Assembly (NCBI RefSeq): GCF_046119375.1
Contig: NW_027362765.1
Location: 166,718,001-166,782,000 of the forward strand
Direction: 5' to 3'
Source: Phyllobates terribilis
Lineage: Eukaryota
Length of the DNA: 64,000 nt
The notes beneath the pieces are model-generated. The model did not search any database. It worked only from the letters and a program-made list of their open reading frames with translations, and had not been told where the DNA came from. Position numbers and translations under genes: made by a program. This document shows, in pieces, positions 19-57,386 of the stretch (position 1 is the first letter of the stretch; every line of letters begins with the position of its first letter).

Positions 19-2628
19 TTGTTGCGGATCGCACACGAGATTCCGATGGCCGGACACCTAGGGATCGCTAAAACCAAGGCCAGGATAGCTCAGCATTTCT
101 ACTGGCCTGGGATGGGAGCCGCGGTGGGTGCCTACTGCCGTTCGTGTGACACCTGTCAGAGGGTGGGGAAGGCGGGGCCGCGCCCCAAAGCCCCACTGGT
201 AACTCTGCCAATCATCGAAGAGCCTTTCTCGAGGGTCGCTGTGGATCTTATTGGACCTCTGTCCACTCCCAGCCACTCCGGGAAATGCTTCATACTCACG
301 GTAGTGGACTATGCCACCCGGTACCCGGAAGCGGTAGCTTTGTCGTCCATTCGGGCCGACAAGGTGGCTACCGCCTTACTGGAGATCTTCTCCAGAGTGG
401 GTTTCCCCCAAGAAATGCTCACCGACCGAGGGACCCAGTTCATGTCGCGGCTGATGGAGTCCCTCTGTAAGCAAATGCAGGTGCAACATCTGGTGGCCAG
501 CCCGTATCACCCACAGACTAATGGCCTGTGTGAGCGGTTCAATGGCACCTTAAAGCAGATGCTTAAGATGTTGGTCGACTCCCACGGGAGAGACTGGGAG
601 CGCTACCTCCCACACCTCCTATTTGCTTACCGGGAGGTTCCGCAGGCCTCAACGGGGTTCTCCCCCTTTGAGCTCCTGTACGGGCGACGGGTACGGGGCC
701 CCCTGGCTCTGGTGAAGGAAGCATGGGAAGGGGATTTGGCCACCCCCGAGGTGTCGGTCATCGAGTATGTCGTGCGCCACCGGGACAGGATGATGGCCTT
801 GGCAAAGCTGGTGCAGGACAATATGGCCCAGGCCCAGGCCGACCAGAAGCGGTGGTACGACCAGAATGCTTGTGAGAGGACCTACCAGGTGGGTCAAAAG
901 GTGTGGGTACTGGTCCCCGTACCACAGAACAAGCTTCAGGCAGCCTGGGAAGGTCCCTACTTCGTGCACCAGAAACTCAATGCCGTCACCTATCTGGTCA
1001 CCCTGGATCACGCCCGTGGAAGGAGGAAGGCCTTCCACGTGAACATGATGAAGGCTCATCATGAGCGGGAAGCGACTGCCCACCCAGTGTGCAACCTTCC
1101 CGAGGAAGGAGAGGTAGAAACCCTCCTGGATCTGCTCACCCAAGCCAAGGCGGGTGGGTCCATCGAGGATGTGGGGGTTGGCCACCAGCTCACGGAGGAC
1201 CAACGGTCCCAGCTGGGGACCACCCTGCACCCCTTCCGGGGGCTGTTCAGCAGCCTGCCCGGAAGGACTGAGATGGCTGTCCACGACGTGGACACTGGCG
1301 ATCACCCGCCGATCCGGCGTTCAGCATATCGGGTCTCTTTCGAGGTGCAGGGAAACATGCGCCAAGAGATAGACGAGATGCTGAAGCTGGGGGTGATCCA
1401 GGCATCCAGCAGCGCGTGGGCCTCGCCTGTAGTCCTCGTACCAAAGAAGGACCGTACTACACGGTTCTGCGTGGACTACCGGGGGCTCAACGCTGTAACG
1501 GCCACCGATGCGTTCCCCATACCACGCATCGATGACCTGCTCGATCGGATGGCCGGGGCTAAGTACCTGACCATCATGGATCTGAGCCGGGGGTACTGGC
1601 AGATTCCTCTGACCCCCGCGGCAAGGGAACGCTCTGCCTTTATCACCCCTTTTGGACTGTACGAGTCCACAGTGATGCCATTCGGCATGAAGAATGCCCC
1701 TGCCACTTTTCAGCGGATGGTCAATACGCTGCTTGAGGGACTTGAAGGGTACGCGGCTGCGTACTTGGACGATATTGCAGTCTTCAGTCCCACTTGGGAG
1801 GATCACCTAGAGCACCTGCGGCAGGTGCTCGGTCGGATCCACCGGGCAGGCTTGACCATCAAGCCGGAAAAGTGCCAGCTGGGCATGAGTGAGGTCCTCT
1901 ACCTGGGTCACCGGGTAGGCGGGGGGGTTCTGAAGCCAGAACCGGGGAAAGTGGATGCCATCGCATCCTGGCCCACTCCTAGGACCAAAAAGCAGGTGAT
2001 GTCCTTCTTGGGGACCGCCGGGTACTATAGGAGGTTCGTCCCACACTATAGCACCCTGGCCAAGCCCCTGACGGACCTCACCAAGAAGAAGCTGCCCGTC
2101 GCAGTCGACTGGACAGTCGCCTGCGAGACAGCTTTCGGGGCACTCAAGGCCGCCCTAAGTAGCTCCCCTGTACTGCAAGCTGCCGACTTCGACCGGCCGT
2201 TTGTGGTACAGACCGACGCCAGTGACTTTGGCCTCGGTGCTGTGCTAAGTCAGGTCAACACGACAGGCCAGGAACATCCTGTCTTGTACCTGAGCAGGAA
2301 GCTACTGCCCCGGGAGGTGGCTTACTCCACGGTGGAAAAAGAATGCCTGGCAATTGTATGGGCCCTGCAGCGTCTGCAGCCCTACTTGTACGGGAGCCAT
2401 TTCACCGTGGAGACGGACCACAACCCCCTCAGCTGGTTACACACGGTCTCTGGGTCGAATGGCAGGTTGCTACGCTGGAGCCTCGCTCTCCAGCAGTACC
2501 ACTTCTCCATTCGCCACAGAAGAGGCCGTGACCACGGTAACGCTGACGGGTTATCCCGGCAAGGGGAGGGTGCAGAAGGACGCACGGGGGAACACAGGAA
2601 TGTGCTACCCCCTCGCGCCCTCGTATAG
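19..2628 (+). CDS. Gmr1-like Ty3/Gypsy pol, 3' part (integrase - reverse transcriptase - RNase H); the frame is open from the window edge, so the true start lies upstream
   Basis: Uninterrupted 869-codon frame. HHCC tail (HEIPMAGH...CRSCDTC), integrase DDE (VAVDLIGP / LTDRGTQF / GLCERFNGT), GPY motif (WEGPY), then RT (LVPKKD, RFCVDYR, YLDD), then RNase H (QTDASD, EKEC, ETDH). The INT-before-RT order is the Gmr1 clade hallmark. Confidence 0.93.
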   Translation: MLRIAHEIPMAGHLGIAKTKARIAQHFYWPGMGAAVGAYCRSCDTCQRVGKAGPRPKAPLVTLPIIEEPFSRVAVDLIGPLSTPSHSGKCFILTVVDYATRYPEAVALSSIRADKVATALLEIFSRVGFPQEMLTDRGTQFMSRLMESLCKQMQVQHLVASPYHPQTNGLCERFNGTLKQMLKMLVDSHGRDWERYLPHLLFAYREVPQASTGFSPFELLYGRRVRGPLALVKEAWEGDLATPEVSVIEYVVRHRDRMMALAKLVQDNMAQAQADQKRWYDQNACERTYQVGQKVWVLVPVPQNKLQAAWEGPYFVHQKLNAVTYLVTLDHARGRRKAFHVNMMKAHHEREATAHPVCNLPEEGEVETLLDLLTQAKAGGSIEDVGVGHQLTEDQRSQLGTTLHPFRGLFSSLPGRTEMAVHDVDTGDHPPIRRSAYRVSFEVQGNMRQEIDEMLKLGVIQASSSAWASPVVLVPKKDRTTRFCVDYRGLNAVTATDAFPIPRIDDLLDRMAGAKYLTIMDLSRGYWQIPLTPAARERSAFITPFGLYESTVMPFGMKNAPATFQRMVNTLLEGLEGYAAAYLDDIAVFSPTWEDHLEHLRQVLGRIHRAGLTIKPEKCQLGMSEVLYLGHRVGGGVLKPEPGKVDAIASWPTPRTKKQVMSFLGTAGYYRRFVPHYSTLAKPLTDLTKKKLPVAVDWTVACETAFGALKAALSSSPVLQAADFDRPFVVQTDASDFGLGAVLSQVNTTGQEHPVLYLSRKLLPREVAYSTVEKECLAIVWALQRLQPYLYGSHFTVETDHNPLSWLHTVSGSNGRLLRWSLALQQYHFSIRHRRGRDHGNADGLSRQGEGAEGRTGEHRNVLPPRALV

Positions 2629-9583: not shown

Positions 9584-11210
9584 CAGTTAGGTCCATATAT
9601 ATTTGGACAGAGACAACATTTTTCTAATTTTGGTTCTAGACATTACCACAGTGAATTTTAAACAAAACAATTCAGATGCAGTTGAAGTTCAGACTTTCAG
9701 CTTTCATTTGAGGGTATCCACATTAAAATTGGATGAAAGGTTTAGGAGTTTCAGCTCCTTAACATGTGCCACCCTGTTTTTAAAGGGACCAAAAGTAATT
9801 GGACAATTGACTCCAAGGCTATTTCATGGACAGGTGTGGGCAATCCCTTCGTTATGTCATTCTCAATTAAGCAGATAAAAGGCCTGGAGTTGATTTGAGG
9901 TGTGGTGCTTGCATTTGGAAGGTTTTGCTGTGAAGTAAACATGCGGTCAAAGGAGCTCTCCATGCAGGTGAAACAAGCCATCCTTAAGCTGCAAAAACAG
10001 AAAAAACCCATCCGAGAAATTGCTACAATATTAGGAGTGGCAAAATCTACAGTTTGGTACATCCTAAGAAAGAAAGAAAGCACTGGTGAACTCATCAATA
10101 CAAAAAGACCTGGGCGCCCATGGAAGACAACAGTGGTGGATGATCGCAGAATAATCTCCATGGTGAAGAGAAACCCCTTCACAACAGCCAACCAAGTGAA
10201 CAACACTCTCCAGGAGGTAGGCGTATCAATATCCAAATCTACCATAAAGAGAAGACTGCATGAAAGTAAATACAGAGGGTTCACTGCATGGTGCAAGCCA
10301 CTCATAAGCATCAGGAATAAAAAGGCTAGACTGGACTTTGCTAAAAACATCTAAAAAAGCCAGCACAGTTCTGGAAGAACATTCTTTGGACAGATGAAAC
10401 CAAGATCAACCTCTACCAGAATGATGGAAAGAGAAAAGTATGGCGAAGACGTGGTACAGCTCATGATCCAAAGCATACCACATCATCTGTAAAACACGGC
10501 GGACACAGTGTGATGGCTTGGGCATGCATGGCTGCCAGTGGCACTGGGTCACTAGGGCAGAAGCAGCCGAATGAATTCTGATGTATTCAGAGCCATACTG
10601 TGTGCTCAGATCCAGCCAAATGCAGCCAAACTGATTGGTCGTCGTTTCATACTACAGATGGACAATGACCCAAAACATAAAACCAAAGCAACCCAGGGGT
10701 TTATTAAAGCAAAGAAGTGGAATATTCTTGAATGGCCAAGTCAGTCACCTGATCTCAACCCAATTGAGCATGCATTTCACTTGTTAAAGACTAAACTTCA
10801 GACAGAAAGGCCCACAAACAGCAACTGAAAACCACCGCAGTGAAGAGTGAAGGCATGGCAGAGCATCAAAAAGGAGGAAACACAGCGTTTGGTGATGTCC
10901 ATGAGTTCAAGACTTCAGGCAGTCATTGCCAACAAAGGGTTTTCAACCAAGTACTAGAAATGAACATTTTATTTACAATTATTTAATCTGTCCAATTACT
11001 TTTGGTCCCTTTAAAAACAGGGTGGAACATGTTAAGGAGCTGAAACTCCTAAACCCTTCATCCAATTTTAATGTGGATACCCTCAAATGAAAGCTGAAAG
11101 TCTGAACTTCAACTGCATCTGAATTGTTTTGTTTAAAATTCATTGTGGTAATGTCTAGAACCAAAATTAGAAAAATGTTGTCTCTGTCCAAATATATATG
11201 GACCTAACTG
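9584..11210 (+). mobile_element. Tc1-family DNA transposon, full length with long (222 bp) TIRs, defective
   Basis: TA duplication at 9582-83 and 11211-12. TIRs 9584-9805 and 10989-11210 start CAGTTAGGTCCATATATATTTGGACAG. Length 1627 bp. Confidence 0.95.
9941..10957 (+). pseudogene. Tc1 transposase pseudogene (DD34E type)
   Basis: MRSKELSMQVKQ... paired-like HTH with GRPWK. Catalytic motifs WTDET, QMDNDPKH, SPDLNPIEH. Frameshift near 10350, small deletion near 10555, further disruption near 10825. Confidence 0.9.
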
Positions 11211-24163: not shown

Positions 24164-24481
24164 AGGGGTCGTCCACATTTTTTTTTTACTTAAAGGAATT
24201 TTCCAGATTTGGAAAAAAAAAACACCTGTTTCTTGGCTGCAAAAAAAAAAAATAAAAATGTTTACTCACCCTCTCCGGGTCCAATAAGTGAGCTCAGTGG
24301 CACATCTTGTCAGCTCGGCAAAGCCACTGAGCTCAGTGACAGCAACCAAATAACAGAGACTGGGGCAGCGGCAGAGATACTGCGCCAGACCACGGGAGGG
24401 TAAGGAAAGAATAATTTGGTTTTTTTTTTTTACAACAAACTGTACATATCAGGAAAAGTTTTTTGAAATAGGACAACCCTT
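24164..24481. mobile_element. TTAA-flanked MITE (Kolobok/T2-like)
   Basis: TTAA|AGGGGTCGTCC ... GGACAACCCTT|TTAA. Confidence 0.7.
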
Positions 24482-24728
24482 TTAAGCTGAAGACGTTAAG
24501 GTGCCAATAATATAAATAAATTCAGGACATTTAAGCCATGCCCATGGAATGTCCCCAATGTCGCGGTGTCCTAGTAAGTGGTAGGCATGCCAAAAGTGAA
24601 CACTGTCCTGGTAAGGCTGCCGTGGGAGTCTGAACTGGACACCGGACCAGGGCAGAGAGAATCTATTTGCGCGTTAGCATGGAAGCGTCATATCTCCCAT
24701 GTGTCTCCAGCAATCAGTCCATCTAATG

Positions 24729-25216
24729 CACACATGTCAAACTTGGGCCTGTGGGCCAAATTTGGCCCTTAATGCCATATGGAGGACTATGTGGGGCCAT
24801 TATTCTGTATGGAGGGCTACGTGTGGCCAATTATACTGTGTGGAGGGTTGTTTGGGGATCACAGTTGGGGCCTCATACTGTGTTGGGGTCACCATACTTT
24901 GCCAGGCAAGTTGAGGGGAGGGGTACAGTAGGGTCATCATACCATATGTGTGGAGGAATTCACTGTAGGGGTATCATACTGTGTTTGGGGGGAGCACTAC
25001 TGTTGGCATCATACTTTATGGGGCCAATGAAAGGGCAATCTAGAGGCTTCAATAGGAGGAAAATTACTATGTAAGGGCTGCAAAGTTGTGAGATATGCCC
25101 CTTTGTGACCCCACCGAATATTACAATTTTTTTTTAAAATAAATATCAAGGTTGGCCCGCGACTTTGTCCAAGTTTTTAATTTTGGCCCTCTGTGTATTT
25201 GAGTTTGACATGCCTG
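24729..25216. mobile_element. hAT-type MITE with minisatellite interior
   Basis: Perfect 8-bp TSD ATCTAATG (24721-28, 25217-24). TIR CACACATGTCAAACT / AGTTTGACATGCCTG. Confidence 0.85.
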
Positions 25217-26340
25217 ATCTAATGTAACTATATAGGTTGTTGGCACGCCTTTACTTCACTTTGTGGTATTAATTAGATTTTTCTAAACATTGTCCCACTA
25301 ATCCACTGCAAGCAAGACCATGTTTGTCAAATTTAAAGAAAGTCATGACATTTAGTATATGTCCACACCAGATTTATAGCCTCCGCTTGACATTTACATC
25401 GGGAAAAGCTTTTGATGTGTATGTTAAATGTAGGAGGCCTATGATCCTGCTCATGCTGTTCTCTGCTGTGCATTCAGGTCTTCTTCTGTGGCTTCTATTT
25501 GAAATCCGTGAAACAGGAAAATTCTGCCGTGTCCTTGTGCACATCTGAAAACAATGCCATCACGAAGTGCAAACACTGCCCAAAGTTTCTGGACTCCATT
25601 GGCTTTATTTAATTCTATCGTTCTCTCTGGAGCATTTCTTAATCCCATTTTATGGGGATTCAGATGGTACCTCCGAATTTAGAAATGAGCAGTCAGCAAA
25701 ACAAAGCATGAACAGGCCCTAACAGTGACATCTGTCATGCATATACTTCAATGTAAATAAAAAAAAGCCATTTAACGAATACCTTTTATAGGATCTTATC
25801 TTTTATTCCATGCATTTTTTGCAGTATACTGACATATTACATATCACATAAAAGTCTTCCACTCTGAATGGTTTTTTGGCTTTGATCTTGCAATAGACCC
25901 CAATGGATGCGTTTAGCAAGTACATCAGGAGCTTTCTCTACATAAATGCTAAATATAGAGCAAAAACATGTGGTGGACAGTCACATCGCCCAAGATTGTA
26001 ATAACCCGCCAGGAGGGCATTCCATATATAACCTTAGGCTGATATATATATTCAATTATGCAGAAGTTTTATTGCAAATCAGATCTCTCTATAAGCTAGG
26101 AGATGTCTCATTGTCAGTTGCTAATCCTTGGGATGGATCCATGGGGGTAGAATGTTGTATCTCATGATGTCTTAGAACGTCAAAAGTCTCAGTCAAAGTG
26201 TACTCTTCATCTTCAGACCTGCATACTTTGCTCCATATTTGGCCTGTGATTGTTTGGGTGGGTGGCCTTTATGTTGCTCCCCATCATGATGACATTGGGC
26301 CTCTGGATTATTGATTCTCATTATAGAGGACATTATCGCC

Positions 26341-26895
26341 TCATCGCTCATTTTCCTTTGCCATCTTGCACATTTTCTCCAGAGCCTCATGAACACCTTC
26401 TCCGGTGACTCCCGAGCAGCCACACACGTCCCATCTCCCAGAAGGAAAATTGTGAAGTTTAAGATGATGCACAAGTTCAGAAGGACTACAAGCGCCAGCC
26501 AGATCCTGCTTATTGGCCAGTACAATAAATGGTAAGTCCTGTGAGTCCATACATACCGCATGGAAGAGTTCTTCATGGGCATCATAAAATCTCTCGGTGT
26601 CCTTACTGTCCACTACAAACATAAAGCCTTGGCACATTTCCAAAAAATGTCTTTTCAAGGGCCCACCTTTGGCTCCTAGACTAACGTCCCATACTACAAG
26701 TGATAGGTCCTGAAAGATGTCCAAGGTCTCAACATTGTAACTAACAGTTGGAATGGTTTCCACAGCTTCTTTGTGCTTCAATCTGTACAGTATTGTAGTT
26801 TTGCCACTTCCATCAGGTCCAATCATTACAATGGTAGCCTTCCTGAGCTGTGTCCTGCCACACAGCCCCTGTACTCGGCTCACCAGGGTGCCCAT
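26341..26895 (-). CDS. Atypical single-exon ARF-like small GTPase (ARF-C), 184 aa from MGTLVS
   Basis: MGxxxS myristoylation consensus; G1 GPDGSGKT; G2 IPTVSYNV; G3 altered (WDVSLGAKGGPLK); G4 NKQD; G5 CSG. No internal stops or introns. The ORF track's upstream ATG at 26934 is less likely because it would bury the myristoylated Gly2. Confidence 0.8.
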   Translation of the reverse strand: MGTLVSRVQGLCGRTQLRKATIVMIGPDGSGKTTILYRLKHKEAVETIPTVSYNVETLDIFQDLSLVVWDVSLGAKGGPLKRHFLEMCQGFMFVVDSKDTERFYDAHEELFHAVCMDSQDLPFIVLANKQDLAGACSPSELVHHLKLHNFPSGRWDVCGCSGVTGEGVHEALEKMCKMAKENER

Positions 26896-27392
26896 ATTCT
26901 CTACTGCCCCAAAATGTGACCAGAGAGGACGCACTTCACTATTGAGTCACAGTAGGAAATCCTTCAGACTAATGACACGTGATGATCACTTCTCCTCCCA
27001 GTCATCCCTGTGCTATGCCAAACTCTCCATGCTGGTGCTGCTGTACAAGAAAAAAAACTTTGTTAGACAAAAAAGCATTGAACTTTAGACAGGTTCCTGA
27101 AGGCTACACAAAGGGATCTAGATAGAAGACGGAATTTAACCCTTTAGCTTCATGAGCTTGATAATAACCAGAACAGCTAATCCTCTGCAGTTGTCCCCAG
27201 AACACATTAAATTTACAGATCTTAATAATGTGTCCTGCAATGGCATTTTATAGGGTGACATTCAGTGACCCCCTCTAAACTGTGCACTCTGGAGATGATA
27301 GTTAAAAAATACCACCCTCCGCCTGGCAGGTATACCTCATTGACCTCATTAGTAGGTTGTTTTAACTCTTTCCAGAGTGTACAGGGACCACT

Positions 27393-27844
27393 GCAATGGT
27401 ACTCACCAGCCAAGAATGTCAAGAAAAATGCACACCAGGACGCAGCCGACCCCCTTTTGTAAGAAGGAGGTAACACAGGTGCAGAATGCTGATGAACAAT
27501 CACTATCATCCCCTCTCACTGGAGGAGCGACTGCCTAGCACTAAAACTGCACACAGATGAAACTTGCAATAGGGTGCAATTCACACACTCGCGGCACCGT
27601 GCCTAGTCAGTATCCTATTACACGCCCCTACTATTCGATTAGGCGGGATGCCCGACACCCTATCCGAGCATCGCAGAGGTGCAAAGCCCTCAGTTCACAA
27701 GGTCACCATTAATGGGCCTGGCTGCACCCTGGCAGATAAAAAAAATCAGCATTCTGCACCTGTGTTACCTCCTTCTTACAAAAGGGGGTCGGCTGCGTTC
27801 TGGTGTGCATTTTTCTTGACACCTTGGCTGGTGAGTAACATTGC
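27393..27844. mobile_element. Fold-back MITE with ~100 bp inverted arms
   Basis: Arm ~27393-27493 is the reverse complement of ~27745-27844 (TACTCACCAGCCAAG...GCAGAATGCTGA). No clear TSD. Confidence 0.7.
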
Positions 27845-28266
27845 CTTTCTGCTGTTTTCTACAATCAAAAGTGGCGCCTATGACTAAAAAAAAATCCTGA
27901 TTGTCAGTGTCGGATCCAGATGATTGCAGCTGTTTGTTACCCTGGAGAAAATCCATGATGTGTATTCAGATCTTGGGGTCTCCCCAGTCATACTGGTGAT
28001 GTAATTTTATTTGGGGCCCTCACCTGTGTCTGTGTCAGGGCAGGTAGCAGCGGAAACATCCTACATGACACGGGCTCCTGACAGCAGATTTAGGAAATGT
28101 TATTGTAATCTATCTAAACTGCTTGTGGCTTATAAATGCAGATTGTGTTCACTGTATAAAGAAGGGGCTGGCTGATTCCATGGGCACCACGGCAGTAGTA
28201 AGTGGCCCATGAGTAGAATTATGAGCCCTTTAGTCAGTCAGTTCTGTGCAGGCCCATACAACTTAA

Positions 28267-28530
28267 AAGGGTTGTTTTAGGAATATTCTCTATAAGACTG
28301 GCAATCTGGAAAGTAAAGTGTTAACGCAACCTTACCAATATCCCCCGCCACTCCTGCTACAGCGATGATGTCCTGGCACATGACCGCTGCAGCCAAACAC
28401 TGGCTGTAGTGAAACACTACTGTAATCATAGATTGGCTAGAGCAGTCACATGTCCCTGTGACTGGACGTCATCACTGGTAGCAGGAAATGTGAATATTCT
28501 GTAACAAAATTTACTCTCTAGACAACCCCT
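28267..28530. mobile_element. TTAA-flanked MITE
   Basis: TTAA|AAGGGTTGTT ... GACAACCCCT|TTAA; shares its right TTAA with the next MITE. Confidence 0.6.
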
Positions 28531-28534
28531 TTAA

Positions 28535-28891
28535 AGGGAAGCTGTCAGCATGTTTTTTTCCATATGGAAGTAGTGGTATGGCTGTGCAGACCTATCCATG
28601 TTACCCTTTTAAGGTAGAAATCCTGTCATAAGAAATCAACAAAGAAGTCAGATGCAAATCAGGCTGGAAGTGCACTGGTGGGGGCGTGTGCACTTGGAAA
28701 GAGCAACCTAAAGGTATGGACACGCCCCCAGTGCACTTCCACCCTGATTTGCATATAACTTTTATATTAGAATTCTCATGACTTGGTACATTGGATCTCT
28801 ACAAAAATAAATTGTTATTATTATTGGGGGATAAGCACCTATACAGCCATAACATTACTGCTATATGGAAAAATGTGCTGACAGGTTCCCT
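28535..28891. mobile_element. TTAA-flanked MITE (Kolobok/T2-like)
   Basis: TTAA|AGGGAAGCTGTCAGCA ... TGCTGACAGGTTCCCT|TTAA, with an internal palindrome. Confidence 0.8.
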
Positions 28892-29076
28892 TTAATGTCT
28901 GGATGCCTAGATCACTTTTAGGCAGGATTCACACAATGCCTGGATTGACCACAAGTTTCCCAAACTGACCTTACAACCTCATACGTGTCTATGAGGCTGA
29001 AATATGTGAGATCTGCCCCTGTGAGCCCGACTTTAGAGCACCAGCAGCATAAAGACCATATTATAAGGCAGTTTTA

Positions 29077-29260
29077 GGCCATGTTCACACGTTCAGTATT
29101 TTACATCAGTATGTGTAAGCCAAAATCAGGTAAGGAACAATGAGAGGAAAAGTATAATAGAAACATGTGCACAACTTCTGCATTTTTCACCCACTCCTGG
29201 TTTTGGCTTACAAATACTGAGGTAAAATACTGACCAAATACTGAACATGTGAATGTGGCC
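29077..29260. mobile_element. PIF/Harbinger-like MITE
   Basis: TTA TSD; TIR GGCCATGTTCACACGTTCAGTATTT / AAATACTGAACATGTGAATGTGGCC. Confidence 0.8.
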
Positions 29261-29399
29261 TTATAGTTGGCCTAAAGCAGGTTATGTGACTTAGAATCAG
29301 CATATACTCGCTTTTCTTGGATCATATACCAAGGATCCAATGTAATGTGAAAGCCGTGCAAAAATACCATCTACTAGTGAGGACACTGCCCCACTGTCA

Positions 29400-29595
29400 C
29401 TATTTGCTCAGTGTTCAGTCAGTATTTTTTCTCAGGAGTGGGAGCCAAAACCAGGAGTGGGTGATAAATGCAGAACTGGTGACTTGTTTCTATTATACCT
29501 TTTCTCTGATTGTTCCTCACCTGGTTTTGGCTCCCACTCCTGAGAAAAAATACTGACCGAAGACTGACCAAATACTGATAGTGGGTTCGTAGCCT
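29400..29595. mobile_element. Second copy of the 22787 MITE family, opposite orientation
   Basis: Its core is the reverse complement of the 22787-22978 core. The left end is degenerate. Confidence 0.7.
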
Positions 29596-30569
29596 GAGAG
29601 ACACATGAGGGATGTCAGGATCTGCAGCATTCTCTGCAGTAGAGATACCTGCCCTTGTTATTTTGTGGCTTCAGCTATCTGTCCATACCTGTCACCGCCC
29701 TGTGCCTGAGTTCACTTCCCATGATGCACTCCCAAATGTCACTGTCACAACAGGTTATATAACAAATTCCAACACTACACAAAGTGACAGTGCAATACGG
29801 AAGTTTTTCACTACTATCTTCATCAGGTCTAACACATCTATTTAAACCCCTGGACAACCCCTTTTTAAATGAAACAGTGCCCCAAATAAAATCATATACA
29901 CACCTCCCAGACGAGCACCATTCCAATGATGTCGGCGCTGTGATGCCAGTGCTCGCACTGTTATGTCACATAAGCACTACAGTCAGTAAATGGCTGCTGG
30001 TGGGCTGCAGCGCTCATGTGACATAATGTCACACAAGCGCTGACAAAGTGCCCGACAGCCAGTTCAGGGGGTGAGTATATGCTGATTTTATATTACACAA
30101 GGCACTCTTTCATTTAAGTAAATTATACACAAACCCATTTAATAATGTAAGCAGTTTGTATTGTGAAATCTGATTACAGATCCACTTTAACCACGACGTG
30201 AATGACCAATTCAAGCCAAAACATGGAGACCCAAAGGCATCTTTGTTACATGACAAGACTTTATTAATATCATAACTCATTACCGTCCTGGATTCAGCTC
30301 AACAGTCCTGAAATTGACAACCTGTCCTGGAAGGTCAGGGGCATGTCCCAACTTCAGTTGTATTTGTGTCCTCAGGACACAGATACAGATGACTATAATG
30401 GTGGTGCAGGGAACTGTGAGATCCCTGCTCCACCATTTTGTCTAGGTAGAGACTGAAAGGCCTGCAAGGTCCTTTAGGTCACATAACTGAGCAGCAGAGA
30501 CCATCTCGGTAGCAGAAGATCAGGAATGTGAACACGGCACAGTCAAGAGGGATGCTTGTGTGGGGGCAA

Positions 30570-31528: not shown

Positions 31529-32146
<618 letters not shown>

Positions 32147-42680: not shown

Positions 42681-45600
42681 ATGAGTGGAAAAAGGCCTGC
42701 TGCTGGTGGAAAGGGGAATAGGCGTGTTGGGAAGGGGAAAAAAGGTTGTGTCCGTGGGGTAGGTGCAGAAGAAAGACCATCTTCCAGCCAAACTAAAATG
42801 TCTACTTCTTTTAGCGGACAATGTGATAAGATCCCTTTCTTACGGCCACGCCAATCGCTACAAATTCCAGATGAGGCACAAAAACAGCAGGTGCTTCAAC
42901 GGATATCAAGTGCTCCTTTAAGTGGGCTCTCCTCCACATCAACTTCAACATCACAAATACTCCAGTCCTCAAAGGTGTCACCCAAATCGCACTTGCTTCC
43001 TCACAGCTCCCAAATCTCCAGCTGCCCGTCTGAGTATGAGGTAGAACAGATGGTTGAGTCTGCAGAGCTGTTTACTCATACTATAGCCTGGGAATCAGAG
43101 GTCGACTCCAGCGCTTCTGTGAATCCAGACGAGGAAATGATCTGCACTGATGCCCAGAATCTTTATGAGTCGGATCCAGGACCAGACGCAGAAGGTTCTG
43201 ACCATAATGTAGACCCTCATTCCCAAACTGTAACTCCTGTTGGTGGAGACAATGAGGAAGACGATGATAAGACTCAAATACCTGATTGGAGCGACAACTT
43301 TAGTTTTTTGTCAGGGCAGGAACAGGTTGGCTCTGAGGACGACGGGTGTGATAACGCACAGGGTGATGATGATGAGGTCGGAGATCCCACTTACTGTCAA
43401 CCCACAGTCAGCCAAGAGATGAGGTCAGCAGAGGAGGTGGAGGAAGATGCTAGTGACGACGAGGTCAGGTTGCGCCTTCCTGGACAGAGACGTAGTACTG
43501 GAAGCACGTCAACAACTGCATCCTCAAACACAACTCTGCCTCTCACCACAAGTCGTGGTGGCTCTTCAGGTCGCATGGGTGCTAAGCCTTGCATAGCCTG
43601 GGCATTTTTTCAGATCGATAAAGATGACCCAACTCGTGTTATCTGTAACATTTGTCAGCAAAAGCTAAGTAGAGGCCAAAAAATACATAGTTTGAGTACT
43701 TCATGCATGAACCGGCACATGGACATGAAGCATAAGTTGCAGTGGGAAGCTCAGTGTGCTACAATGCGGCCTAGCCGGCCGGGCCAATCACCGTCTGCCA
43801 TATCTTGTGCATCCGCGGCCTCTTCATCCTCTGTGACTGGGGGGACAGCAGTCACACCTGTTTTGGGGCGCAGACCTGCCACCTCTTTACCCGCAACAGC
43901 CAGCGTGATTGGCAGGTCATCATTTTCTTTGGAGGTGGTAACACCAGCTGGTCTTGAGCGCTGTCCGACATCGATAGCACCACCTTTGGATCAAGGCAAC
44001 CTAACATGTCCGCCTGCATCTTCCTCACAGACCGGCAGTTTGCCGGGGACACCCTTATCAACCCCGTCTAAGCACAATAGCCAGCCCTCGGTCCCTCAGA
44101 TGTGGACAAGTAAAAGACCATTTCCTCCTAGCCATGAGAAAGCTAAGAGGTTGAATTTCACCATCTGCAAGCTCTTGGCTACAGAAATGCTGCCTTTCCG
44201 CCTGGTGGACACAGAGGATTTTCGAGACCTTATGTCCGTCGCAGTGCCCCAGTACCAGATGCCCAGTCGGCACTACTTCTCAAAGAAAGGTGTGCCTGCG
44301 CTCCACCAGCATGTCGCACACAACATCACCGCTTCTTTGAGAAACTCTGTGTGTGACAGGGTGCATTTCACCACAGACACTTGGACGAGTAGGCATGGAC
44401 AGGGGCGTTACATGTCGCTGACTGGGCACTGGGTAACTATGGTGACAGCAGGACAAGGGGCTGCTGTCCAAGTCTTGCCGTCCCCACGAGTTGTGCGTCA
44501 ATCCTCTTTATGTCAAAGTTCCTCCACTGCTTCTGCCTCCTCAACCTCCTCTCGGTCTTCCACCTGCACCCAAAGCCTGTCTGGTCATGCCACAAGCTTT
44601 CTAACTGCGCAGAAGGGATCCTGCACACCTCCTTACTATGCTGGCAGTAGGGCTCAACGTCATCAGGCGGTTTTTACATTGAAATGTCTGGGAAATGTGA
44701 GTCACACAGCTGAGGAGTTGTGGTCAGCTCTGGAGAACCAATTTCATGAATGGTTGTCTCCACTGGACCTGAAACCAGGGAAGGCCGTGTGCGACAATGC
44801 TGCAAACCTGGGTGCGGCCCTTCGCCGGGGCAATGTCACACACGTGCCTTGTATGGCTCACGTGTTGAACCTGGTTGTCCAGCAATTTTTAGCCCACTAT
44901 CCCAGACTAGATGGCCTTCTGCAGAGGGCACGGTCGCTGTGTGCTCACTTCCGCCGTTCGCATCCCGCAGCTCAGCGACTTACATCTCTACAGAAGTCGT
45001 TGGGCCTGCCACTTCACCGGCTAAAATGCGATGTGCCTACCCGGTGGAATTCAACTCTGCACATGTTGCAGCGACTGTGGCAGCACCGACAAGCCCTGGT
45101 GCAATACGTTCTGACGTATAGCCTGGGCCAACGAGATTCAGAGGTGGGGCAAATCACGCTGGAGGAGTGGTCTCAGATCAGGAACCTATGCACCCTTCTG
45201 CACAGTTTTGAAATGGCGACGAAGATGTTTAGTGCTGACGATGCCATTATCAGCATGACTATTCCGGTGATTTACATGCTGGAGCACATGTTAAACAGAA
45301 TTCGGAGTCAGGTGGTGGCACAAGAGGAGGTGGAGGAAGTAGAGGAGGAGGAGTTGTATGCGGAAGGGCTAACATCTGCAAGGTCCAGACGGTCGGCAGC
45401 ACCAAGGCGGCAGGCATGTGAGGGTGGGGGAGATGGTTTTACCAGGGCGCATGGTAGCAGCCAAACTAGTGAGGAAGGTGCAGGAGCCCAGGAAGAAGTG
45501 GAGGACGAACTGATGGAAGACTCATCAGATGAGGGAGACCTTGATCACATTTCTGTTGTGCGAGGTTGGGGGGAGAGGACAGAGGAAGGAAGCATGATTG

Positions 45601-46361
45601 TTACCTCGCCACCAACACAACAGGGACTTGGTGCTCCTGGATGCGCAACACACATGAGTGCCTTCTTGCTGCACTACCTGCAACATGACCCTCGAATTGT
45701 GAGAATTAGAAATAATCCTGACTACTGGGTTGCCACACTGTTAGATCCCCGGTACAAAAGTAAATTTGCAGAAATTATTCCTGCCATAGAAAGGGATGCA
45801 CGCATGCAGGAGTATCAGCAGAGACTGTTGCAGAATCTTACATGTGCTTTTCCACAAAATACCAGTGGTGCACGTAGTGAATCTCACAGTTCCAACTTGC
45901 CAACCGTGGGACCGTCAAGTGTTCAGCACTCAAACCGTAACAGAACCACAGTATCTGCTGGTAACATCAATTTTGCGGAATCATTTCACCACTTTTTTAG
46001 CCCATCCTTTGCAAGGCCACAGGAGACAAGAAGTCTGACACATAGTCAACGCCTAGAGACGATGGTACAGGAGTATCTCCAAGTAAACATTGAAGCCACG
46101 ACTGTGTCACTGGACCCTTGCTCTTTTTGGGCTTCCAATCTGGATAAATGGCCGGAGCTAGCCACTTACGCCTTGGAGATCTTGTCATGCCCCGCAGCCA
46201 GCGTTCTGTCTGAACGTGTGTTCAGCGCTGCTGGTGGTGTGCTGACAGATAAGCGCACGCGGCTCTCCACTGATAATGTAGACAGACTCACGTTCATAAA
46301 GATGAACAAATCATGGATCCGAAACGACTTTTCTACCCCTGTGTCATCCTGGGGAGAGTAA
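42681..46361 (+). CDS. hAT transposase with BED zinc finger (ZBED-like), 1226 aa, open frame
   Basis: BED finger (AWAFF...CNIC...MNRHMDMKH), catalytic FTTDTW, CDNAAN, CMAH, RWNST, and C-terminal dimerisation domain (LSCPAASVLSERVFSAAG...LTFIKMN). Confidence 0.92.
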   Translation: MSGKRPAAGGKGNRRVGKGKKGCVRGVGAEERPSSSQTKMSTSFSGQCDKIPFLRPRQSLQIPDEAQKQQVLQRISSAPLSGLSSTSTSTSQILQSSKVSPKSHLLPHSSQISSCPSEYEVEQMVESAELFTHTIAWESEVDSSASVNPDEEMICTDAQNLYESDPGPDAEGSDHNVDPHSQTVTPVGGDNEEDDDKTQIPDWSDNFSFLSGQEQVGSEDDGCDNAQGDDDEVGDPTYCQPTVSQEMRSAEEVEEDASDDEVRLRLPGQRRSTGSTSTTASSNTTLPLTTSRGGSSGRMGAKPCIAWAFFQIDKDDPTRVICNICQQKLSRGQKIHSLSTSCMNRHMDMKHKLQWEAQCATMRPSRPGQSPSAISCASAASSSSVTGGTAVTPVLGRRPATSLPATASVIGRSSFSLEVVTPAGLERCPTSIAPPLDQGNLTCPPASSSQTGSLPGTPLSTPSKHNSQPSVPQMWTSKRPFPPSHEKAKRLNFTICKLLATEMLPFRLVDTEDFRDLMSVAVPQYQMPSRHYFSKKGVPALHQHVAHNITASLRNSVCDRVHFTTDTWTSRHGQGRYMSLTGHWVTMVTAGQGAAVQVLPSPRVVRQSSLCQSSSTASASSTSSRSSTCTQSLSGHATSFLTAQKGSCTPPYYAGSRAQRHQAVFTLKCLGNVSHTAEELWSALENQFHEWLSPLDLKPGKAVCDNAANLGAALRRGNVTHVPCMAHVLNLVVQQFLAHYPRLDGLLQRARSLCAHFRRSHPAAQRLTSLQKSLGLPLHRLKCDVPTRWNSTLHMLQRLWQHRQALVQYVLTYSLGQRDSEVGQITLEEWSQIRNLCTLLHSFEMATKMFSADDAIISMTIPVIYMLEHMLNRIRSQVVAQEEVEEVEEEELYAEGLTSARSRRSAAPRRQACEGGGDGFTRAHGSSQTSEEGAGAQEEVEDELMEDSSDEGDLDHISVVRGWGERTEEGSMIVTSPPTQQGLGAPGCATHMSAFLLHYLQHDPRIVRIRNNPDYWVATLLDPRYKSKFAEIIPAIERDARMQEYQQRLLQNLTCAFPQNTSGARSESHSSNLPTVGPSSVQHSNRNRTTVSAGNINFAESFHHFFSPSFARPQETRSLTHSQRLETMVQEYLQVNIEATTVSLDPCSFWASNLDKWPELATYALEILSCPAASVLSERVFSAAGGVLTDKRTRLSTDNVDRLTFIKMNKSWIRNDFSTPVSSWGE

Positions 46362-56816: not shown

Positions 56817-57386
56817 ATGGGTGGTCTCCTGAGCAGCCTCTACCAAACTCTTCTGAACTTCTCTGGAACCAAAGCCCGGATCCTGCTACTGGGTCTTGAT
56901 GCTGCAGGAAAGACAACTCTTCTATATAAACTAAAGCTGAATGAGACGGTCTGTACAATCCCCACCATTGGATTCAATGTCGAAACAGTGGAACCCATTC
57001 GTAACGTCACTTTCACCGTGTGGGACGTGGGAGGTCAGGACAGAATCAGAGCCCTGTGGAAACACTACTTTACAAACACCGACGGTCTGGTTTTTGTGGT
57101 GGACAGTGCCGATCCAGAGAGGTTTGGGGAGGCCAAGGCCGAGCTCATAGCCATCCTTGAAAGTGATGAAATGAGAGGGGTCCCATTTGTGGTGATGGCC
57201 AATAAACAAGATCTACCTAGTGCCCAGAAGCCCATGGAGCTAGCAGAAAAATTCGGACTGATGAAGATGAAAGGACATCAGTGGCACGTTCAAGGCTGTT
57301 GTGCTGCCAATGGAGAAGGACTTGTGGAGGGGCTGGAGGTCCTCAGCAATTTGGTAAAACAGTTTCAAAAGAACAAACAGTTCTGA
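56817..57386 (+). CDS. Single-exon ARF-family small GTPase (ARF-B), 189 aa; paralogue of ARF-A
   Basis: MGGLLS myristoylation motif, [38 protein letters not shown]. 143/186 identities with ARF-A by hand count. Confidence 0.93.

Follow-up and report, generated by a model that had tools for sequence, protein, structure and literature searches.

The frog Phyllobates terribilis transcribes and splices a divergent ARF-like gene with a rewritten switch II segment, and this segment is itself under purifying constraint. The gene is located at 26341..26895 (-) of the window, i.e., the whole 64-kb stretch of DNA that was analysed, which is N-free. The coding sequence consists of 184 codons and a stop, and its translation, a protein of 184 aa that begins with MGTLVS and ends in KENER, has zero internal stops. 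The protein matches the Pfam Arf family (PF00025) over residues 17-177 with an E-value of 3.6e-40 and 137.7 bits, compared to a curated cut-off of 22.3, and an identical protein is annotated on the matching NCBI contig of assembly GCA_046119375.1. ARF1 structures are the best solved relatives (E ~1e-36, HMMER against PDB), and a protein-atlas search matched only generic ARF/SAR/ARL clusters. The usual description of ARF-family proteins is that of GDP/GTP switches driven by GEFs and GAPs. Two ORFs that overlap the coding sequence, 26193-26585 (-) and 26311-26535 (+), are taken as chance ORFs within the ARF-like gene.

Rewritten switch II, retained motifs and transcript

When the protein is aligned to ARF1 (HMMER against PDB), W69-L85 pairs with ARF1 W66-F82 without gaps. 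This stretch, codons 69-85 at 26641..26691 (-), comprises G3, switch II and the end of the interswitch, and WDVSLGAKGGPLKRHFL replaces the ARF1 sequence in it. The substitutions, in ARF1 numbering, are G69S, G70L, Q71G, I74G, R75G, W78K, Y81F and F82L. In addition, the GF of switch I has become SY (S52, Y53), by which ARF1 G50 is changed. The family signature wDvGGqxxxRxxW with its catalytic Gln is thereby missing; WDVSLGAKGGPLKRH is present instead, ARF1 G69, G70, Q71, R75 and W78 all being replaced.

Other hallmarks of the ARF family have been kept: G1 GxxxxGK(S/T), G4 NKxD, the switch I Thr and the G3 Asp show no variation or at least 90% conservation. In an alignment of 16 family sequences, M1, G2, G26, G31, K32, T33, D70, G74, N128, K129, Q130, D131, G159 and C160 are invariant. 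These include four residues of the P-loop (G1) GPDGSGKT (codons 26-33, 26797..26820 (-)), the middle positions of which vary within the family (PD, LD, PW, PH or PS). The G4 motif NKQD (codons 128-131, 26503..26514 (-)), which determines guanine specificity, is invariant in family members and relatives alike. The switch I Thr (T50, ARF1 T48) is at least 90% conserved in the 16 sequences, the G3 Asp is D70 (ARF1 D67), and the G5-like GCSG belongs to a GC(S/C) motif that is invariant or nearly so across the sampled frog lineages. Aromatic residues are found at the positions of ARF1 F51, W66 and Y81 (Y53, W69 and F84).

An earlier note, made from the letters of this DNA, had described an intact frame, the switch II changes G69S, G70L, Q71G, R75G and W78K at 26645-26690, the exchange of GF for SY in switch I, and the retention of the G motifs, the myristoylation-type start and the aromatic triad. 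The uninterrupted frame at 26341-26895 (-), the codons at 26641-26691, the ARF1 alignment and the presence of MGTLVS, GPDGSGKT, T50, D70, NKQD and the three aromatics agree with this description. Its further claim, that the changes are concentrated in one normally invariant segment, holds as well. Comparison of the rewritten family with its canonical relatives (see below) yields 29 family-separating positions, 14 of which lie within residues 50-88, a segment that makes up 21% of the protein (one-sided Fisher test, p = 3.3e-4). At thirteen positions, each group has a conserved residue of its own (C12, G29, R38, L58, D59, D63, L66, S72, G74, G77, I124, S161 and I179). Sixteen further positions, including G52, R78, W81, Y84 and N87, are fixed in the canonical copies and free in the rewritten family.

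Transcription was assessed with Logan contigs from four small runs of Phyllobates terribilis, originating from two studies, which were aligned on 24400-30399. In all four runs, contigs cover only an exon of ~1.26 kb, from 25781/25866 to 27040/27042. They match the window letters over 26123-27040, with as sole exception a polymorphism at 26360 in one run (G>A, Ala179Val, run X16). A sequencing artefact at switch II is ruled out by this agreement of four runs from two studies with the window. Another variant, a 3-nt deletion at 26069 in the 3′UTR, occurs in run X15. At 25400-25799 and 27200-27399, three runs have no depth at all; run X2 has trace depth only in 25600-25799, from a contig end at 25781. 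Because the depth is zero on the flanks of the exon, the four runs are not genomic DNA, and the coverage pattern together with a canonical splice joint identifies the material as RNA.

The splice joint, 27040-29689, is seen in one contig of run X1. This contig is 991 nt long, with 918 nt on exon 2 and 73 nt beyond the joint, 44 of which are aligned. The contigs of the other three runs end at the exon 2 boundary, 27040. The joint delineates a 5′UTR intron of 2648 nt (27041..29688 (-), GT..AG) and a 5′UTR exon 1 at 29689..29761 (-), with an exact 3′ end and an approximate 5′ end. The skipped ends read CT..AC on the plus strand, the donor context is CAG/GTATGG, and a polypyrimidine tract and AG lie directly upstream of 27040. 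Exon 2, delimited by contigs from the four runs (25781..27040 (-)), comprises 145 nt of 5′UTR, the coding sequence and ~560 nt of 3′UTR. An AATAAA polyadenylation signal is present at 25802..25807 (-), 21 nt upstream of the end of the longest contig (25781). Expression, which the earlier note had put forward as a check, is thus found as contigs of a spliced transcript in four runs from two studies. Transcript-sized contigs of the orthologues are present in other frogs too. The 5′UTR contains upstream ATGs, at 29720-29722 (-) in exon 1 and at 27028-27030 (-) at the beginning of exon 2; the latter opens a five-codon uORF (ATG GAG AGT TTG GCA TAG). These ATGs may have an effect on translation of the ARF-like gene.

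Frog orthologues and selection

The first homology search returned 16 frog sequences, all of which have the rewritten motif WDV[SGA][LFT]GAKG.PL. Identity to the Phyllobates terribilis protein is 82% in Anomaloglossus, 76% in both Rhinoderma and Bufo, 71% in Hyla and Engystomops, 70% in Dendropsophus and Eleutherodactylus, and 68% in Leptodactylus. It amounts to 57% and 54% in the two copies of Hyperolius, 53% in Discoglossus, 52% in Spea and 47% in Ascaphus. When 1.84 billion representatives were searched exhaustively with a profile, Pelobates (WDVSAGAKGWPL) and a group of ranids (Lithobates, Aquarana and Rana) were added; in the ranids the motif is altered further (WDVSLNPETWPF), with G74 changed to Asn. 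With the exception of the lungfish protein P0019 (WDLNYGAKRK), the same search found no members outside frogs, and none in salamanders, caecilians, amniotes or fishes. Presence or absence in Xenopus and other genomes was judged from annotated proteins only. The orthologues that the earlier note expected in amphibians and sauropsids are thus found in frogs and not in sauropsids, and elsewhere there is one divergent relative in lungfish.

In a maximum-likelihood tree of 61 rows, the 16 frog sequences form one clade with a support of 100/97, in which the branching of Ascaphus, Discoglossus, Spea, ranoids and hyloids is the species order. In a second tree that includes Pelobates and the ranids, the clade is supported at 100/98 and lungfish P0019 is placed next to it at 99/96. 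The lungfish protein is likely the sister of the frog clade, both being long branches. Ascaphus and the ranids (P0306, P0442 and P0443) pair at 94/78, and the Ascaphus copy (L009, 10001-10567) lies between an ATP-synthase-gamma-like gene and KIN17, away from the canonical cluster and IGFBP. This pairing and the different Ascaphus locus hint at two subfamilies within the rewritten clade. An AU test did not reject an origin of the clade inside the frog canonical copies (p = 0.093). The duplication is at least as old as crown frogs, which are ~200 million years old, and is possibly much older. Vertical inheritance, from the common ancestor of extant frogs or from even earlier, is the best explanation for the distribution of the rewritten gene, and descent from vertebrate copies of the Arl19-like group is the best explanation for its origin. 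The clade may date to the lungfish-tetrapod ancestor, with later losses in salamanders, caecilians and amniotes.

Orthologue DNA was retrieved for ten orthologues, and selection was estimated with the codon model GY+F3X4 on eight neobatrachian sequences. The ORF is intact in every orthologue with retrieved DNA (10 orthologues; 11 species and transcripts). Pairwise dN/dS values among neobatrachians are 0.18-0.32 at dS 0.36-0.94. The tree-wide omega is 0.301, and neutrality is rejected when omega is fixed at 1 (2dlnL 149.5). The region-wise comparison that the earlier note proposed gives values below 1 in every region. Residues 1-20 are the most constrained part (omega 0.157), and in residues 21-58 (0.464) the P-loop middle and switch I evolve faster than the rest. 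Residues 59-90, which contain the interswitch and switch II, have an omega of 0.222, the rewritten segment being itself under purifying constraint. Residues 91-125 and 126-184 have values of 0.499 and 0.194, respectively. For overlapping species, the omega of the canonical neighbour is 0.178.

A pseudogene of recent origin, a duplicate under neutral drift or a misassembly could be suspected from the gene's single coding exon in a transposon-rich region and from an omega that is above that of the canonical neighbour (0.30 vs 0.18). This suspicion is refuted, and hardly any credence is left to it, by the intact orthologue ORFs in all 11 species and transcripts with DNA, by the rejection of omega = 1, by the spliced mRNA and by the confirmation of the letters in four runs. 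The earlier note had favoured specialisation over decay, and the retention of the motif across frogs, the dN/dS of 0.30 for the whole gene and 0.22 for its rewritten segment, and the transcribed and spliced gene all argue for this view.

The same note had proposed, among other roles, a decoy for ARF-targeting pathogen effectors; such a protein would sequester effectors that act on host ARFs or exploit them. Many bacterial effectors indeed bind ARF-GTP, as seen in the PDB matches, and switch I evolves somewhat faster. However, those effectors and ARF partners recognise the very surfaces that are altered or relaxed here (switch I, the interswitch and switch II), which a decoy is expected to keep. 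Moreover, omega is below 1 in all regions, without any sign of an arms race, and the motif is stable over the frog radiation. A decoy function is considered very improbable, so the earlier interpretation is supported in part: specialisation is retained and the decoy is dropped.

A putative non-cycling adaptor

Codons 1-17 (26845..26895 (-)) specify a myristoylation-type start with Gly2 and Ser6, a putative amphipathic helix and a family-specific Cys12. In the 16-sequence family, M1 and G2 are invariant and S6, Q9, G10 and C12 are at least 90% conserved. The MGTLVS start and the hydrophobic periodicity are likewise conserved, within the region of lowest omega (codons 1-20). The conserved Gly2/Ser6 start suggests that the protein is myristoylated. 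Cys12 stands where canonical relatives conserve Leu. Because a hydrophobic helix residue is replaced and the change is family-specific, Cys12 is a candidate S-acylation site and thereby a potential permanent membrane anchor.

An AlphaFold2 model based on a 47-row alignment has the ARF fold, with a mean pLDDT of 78.7 and a pTM of 0.78. Confidence is high in the core and low for residues 1-14, and block means are 53-68 over residues 41-80, a region that includes switch I, the interswitch and the beginning of switch II. Foldseek ranks ARF1, ARF6 and ARL3 highest (probability 1.00, TM up to 0.79). The query-normalised TM is 0.75-0.79 against GTP-form or GEF-complex structures and 0.64-0.72 against GDP forms, but this closeness to GTP-form structures may be a habit of the predictor and is given little weight.

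Judged from its sequence, the protein is probably a non-cycling, membrane-bound ARF-like adaptor with a new partner surface, i.e., a hydrolysis-deficient atypical GTPase. The membrane-anchored nucleotide-binding protein, unable to cycle normally, that the earlier note envisaged fits the sequence. N-myristoylation at Gly2, perhaps in combination with S-acylation at Cys12, would seat the protein at the membrane. It would still bind guanine nucleotide and Mg2+, as can be expected from the conservation of GxxxxGKT, the switch I Thr, the G3 Asp, NKQD and G5. Missing from its sequence are the catalytic Gln (ARF1 Q71) and both glycines of DVGGQ, by which the gamma-phosphate is coupled to switch II, as well as the partner-surface residues I74, R75 and W78 (switch II) and G50 (switch I). 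In the absence of Q71, hydrolysis fails, whether intrinsic or stimulated by a GAP (ARF1 Q71L is the standard GTP-locked mutant), and without the flexible glycine of DxxG, switch II cannot follow the gamma-phosphate. Due to the loss of the Gln, the GG pair and the surface residues, GTP is most likely not hydrolysed, either by the protein alone or with an ARF GAP, and the normal toggle of interswitch and switch II is most likely impossible. With I74, R75 and W78 changed, Sec7 GEFs and classical effectors would probably no longer fit. The outcome would be a constitutively loaded, non-cycling adaptor that resembles a class II pseudoGTPase; the sequence has the corresponding features, with Q71 replaced by Gly and the nucleotide-binding motifs G1, G4 and G5 kept. 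The conserved surface S-L-G-A-K-G-x-P-L-K-R-H would bind a partner, and control would be exerted via expression and lipidation instead of GEFs and GAPs.

Some observations speak against this proposal. If the register is shifted by one residue, so that G74 of DxxxG serves as the gamma-phosphate glycine, part of the switch may remain functional; the omega of 0.46 for residues 21-58 could point to weakened nucleotide coupling, and in ranids G74 is Asn, so the motif is not universal. A switch that works after all, either by unconventional catalysis with a GAP residue in trans, comparable to RapGAP, which supplies a catalytic residue in trans to Rap, or by a register-shifted switch II with Gly74 as the DxxG glycine, is regarded as unlikely. 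It agrees with the invariance of Gly74 and the conservation of Lys76 in the 16-sequence family, and with the strong constraint on the rewritten segment (omega 0.22); the conserved switch I Thr and G3 Asp are relevant only to the Mg2+/GTP state. On the other hand, none of the members has a Gln or another obvious catalytic side chain at or next to the Q71 position, the residues I74, R75 and W78 that Sec7 GEFs and ARF effectors use are changed or variable, and ranids have the Asn at position 74.

Even less probable is a nucleotide-free class I pseudoGTPase that serves as a G-domain-shaped scaffold. The variable middle positions of the P-loop and the faster evolution of switch I (omega 0.46) would suit such a scaffold, as would the fact that some ARLs have been purified in the apo state (PMC12722892). 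However, GxxxxGKT, NKQD, the G5 motif GC(S/C), D70 and T50 are invariant or nearly so in all frog lineages sampled, which is hard to explain without nucleotide binding.

The putative adaptor can be compared to several known systems. Firstly, like the GTP-locked mutants ARF1 Q71L and ARF6 Q67L, in which removal of the Gln abolishes GAP-stimulated hydrolysis, the frog protein has lost the Gln of switch II. The mutants keep the remainder of switch II and the effector surface, whereas the frog protein has both rewritten. Secondly, loss of the switch II Gln has natural precedents in ARL10, ARL13A/B, ARL15 and ARL16, which are atypical GTPases or candidate pseudoGTPases (PMC12722892) and, like the frog protein, keep their other G motifs. 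Unlike in these different and older paralogues, both glycines of DVGGQ are replaced as well in the frog protein, and this change is restricted to one frog-centred clade. Thirdly, the class II pseudoGTPases Rnd1-3 and RhoH bind GTP without hydrolysing it (classification quoted in PMC12722892). A GTP-bound state without hydrolysis, a lipid anchor and control by expression or modification are likenesses that are only proposed for the frog protein. Rnd1-3 and RhoH are Rho-family proteins with an experimentally established mechanism, whereas the frog ARF-like protein is known here from its sequence.

The field has yet to settle how atypical ARF members function without catalytic residues (PMC12722892). 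The frog gene constitutes a natural experiment, in which the most conserved signature of the ARF family has been replaced and the replacement is itself held by selection across frogs. The adjacent normal paralogues are built-in controls, and comparison with them could reveal what an ARF G-domain is able to do without the switch II machinery. The case is of moderate interest to ARF specialists. In the literature searched, no paper on the rewritten frog clade was found, and the database names of its members are 'uncharacterized' or misleading.

The Arl19-like group and the genomic neighbourhood

Two canonical ARF-like paralogues are present in the window. Paralogue A (31586..32146 (+), identified by tblastn and its ORF) has a single exon and is arranged head-to-head with the rewritten gene, with ~4.7 kb between the start codons. 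Paralogue B (56817..57386 (+)) groups with canonical frog copies in the tree. The head-to-head pair recurs in Rhinoderma, Hyla, Engystomops, Spea and Dendropsophus, and in Rhinoderma and Spea an IGFBP gene lies downstream of it. The canonical family is abundant in amphibians and is also found in lungfish, coelacanth, squamates, turtles, alligator, bichir, sturgeon and elephant shark, as well as in many invertebrates. Its database names are inconsistent, e.g., 'ARL14', 'arl11.L' and 'ARF1-like'.

One relative in the tree, P0031 (XP_002131839.1), is Arl19a of Ciona (Vargova et al., 2021; PMC8358228). Together with the invertebrate copies, the canonical vertebrate copies and the rewritten clade, it is separated from ARF1/4/6 at 100/99. 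ARL4D is nested inside this Arl19-like assemblage, in agreement with the description of the Arl19 group by Vargova et al. (2021; PMC8358228). The trees contain no bona fide ARL11 or ARL14 sequence. A lungfish protein named 'ARL11' was considered as a true ARL11 and rejected, since a homology search with it returned only the canonical Arl19-like family; it is a divergent member of this group. Arl19 has been described as absent from vertebrates, on a sampling of human and fugu only (Vargova et al., 2021; PMC8358228). Members of the Arl19-like group do occur, in expanded sets, in amphibians, lungfish, coelacanth, reptiles and non-teleost fishes, which corrects the published record of absence.

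The rewritten gene resembles canonical Arl19-like members in its single-exon coding sequence, Gly2 start, G5 motif of the GC(C/S)A type and position in a tandem cluster. It differs from them in that WDVGGQxKIRxLW is replaced by WDVSLGAKGxPLKR in the rewritten clade, AAGKT in the P-loop has become GSGKT, Cys12 has been gained and evolution is faster. Besides the frog clade, other copies with a rewritten switch II occur, namely P0023 in Lytechinus, P0017 and P0019 in lungfish, P0018 in coelacanth, L006:3595-4164 in Engystomops and P0181 in P. terribilis, elsewhere on the contig. Motifs among these copies are WDIGYSEK, WDVCSHPK, WDLNYGAK, WDVCSQTK, WDTASQEK and WDMGGQCRMKALRK. Independent rewriting of switch II has taken place several times in the Arl19-like group, which seems prone to copies with a broken switch.

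A wider and more tentative reading, which is possible rather than probable, is that the Arl19 lineage survives in many non-mammalian vertebrates and repeatedly gives rise to copies in which switch II is rewritten; of these, the frog clade would be the oldest and best conserved. The frog proteins would then be dual-lipidated, GTP-locked or nucleotide-insensitive, and equipped with a partner surface of their own. If this is true, they constitute a new frog-specific module of membrane traffic or signalling and not a variant of any named ARL.

Several other elements are found around the gene. In the intervals 24600-25200 and 29000-29600, each of the four runs has contig word depths of thousands to ~100,000, and partial matches and rearranged joints are numerous. 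The two intervals contain strongly expressed or highly repetitive elements, which flank the gene and lie inside its intron. At 19-2628 (+), an ORF of 869 aa has the domain order integrase (H2C2, rve), reverse transcriptase and RNase H. This order is unusual for gypsy-type families and may be due to tandem or nested copies. An intact ORF of 1226 aa at 42681-46361 (+), in which a BED zinc finger is combined with a hAT dimerisation domain, is a hAT-type transposase or a domesticated copy of one. Lastly, a fragment of a Tc1/mariner transposase is located at 9902-10354 (+).
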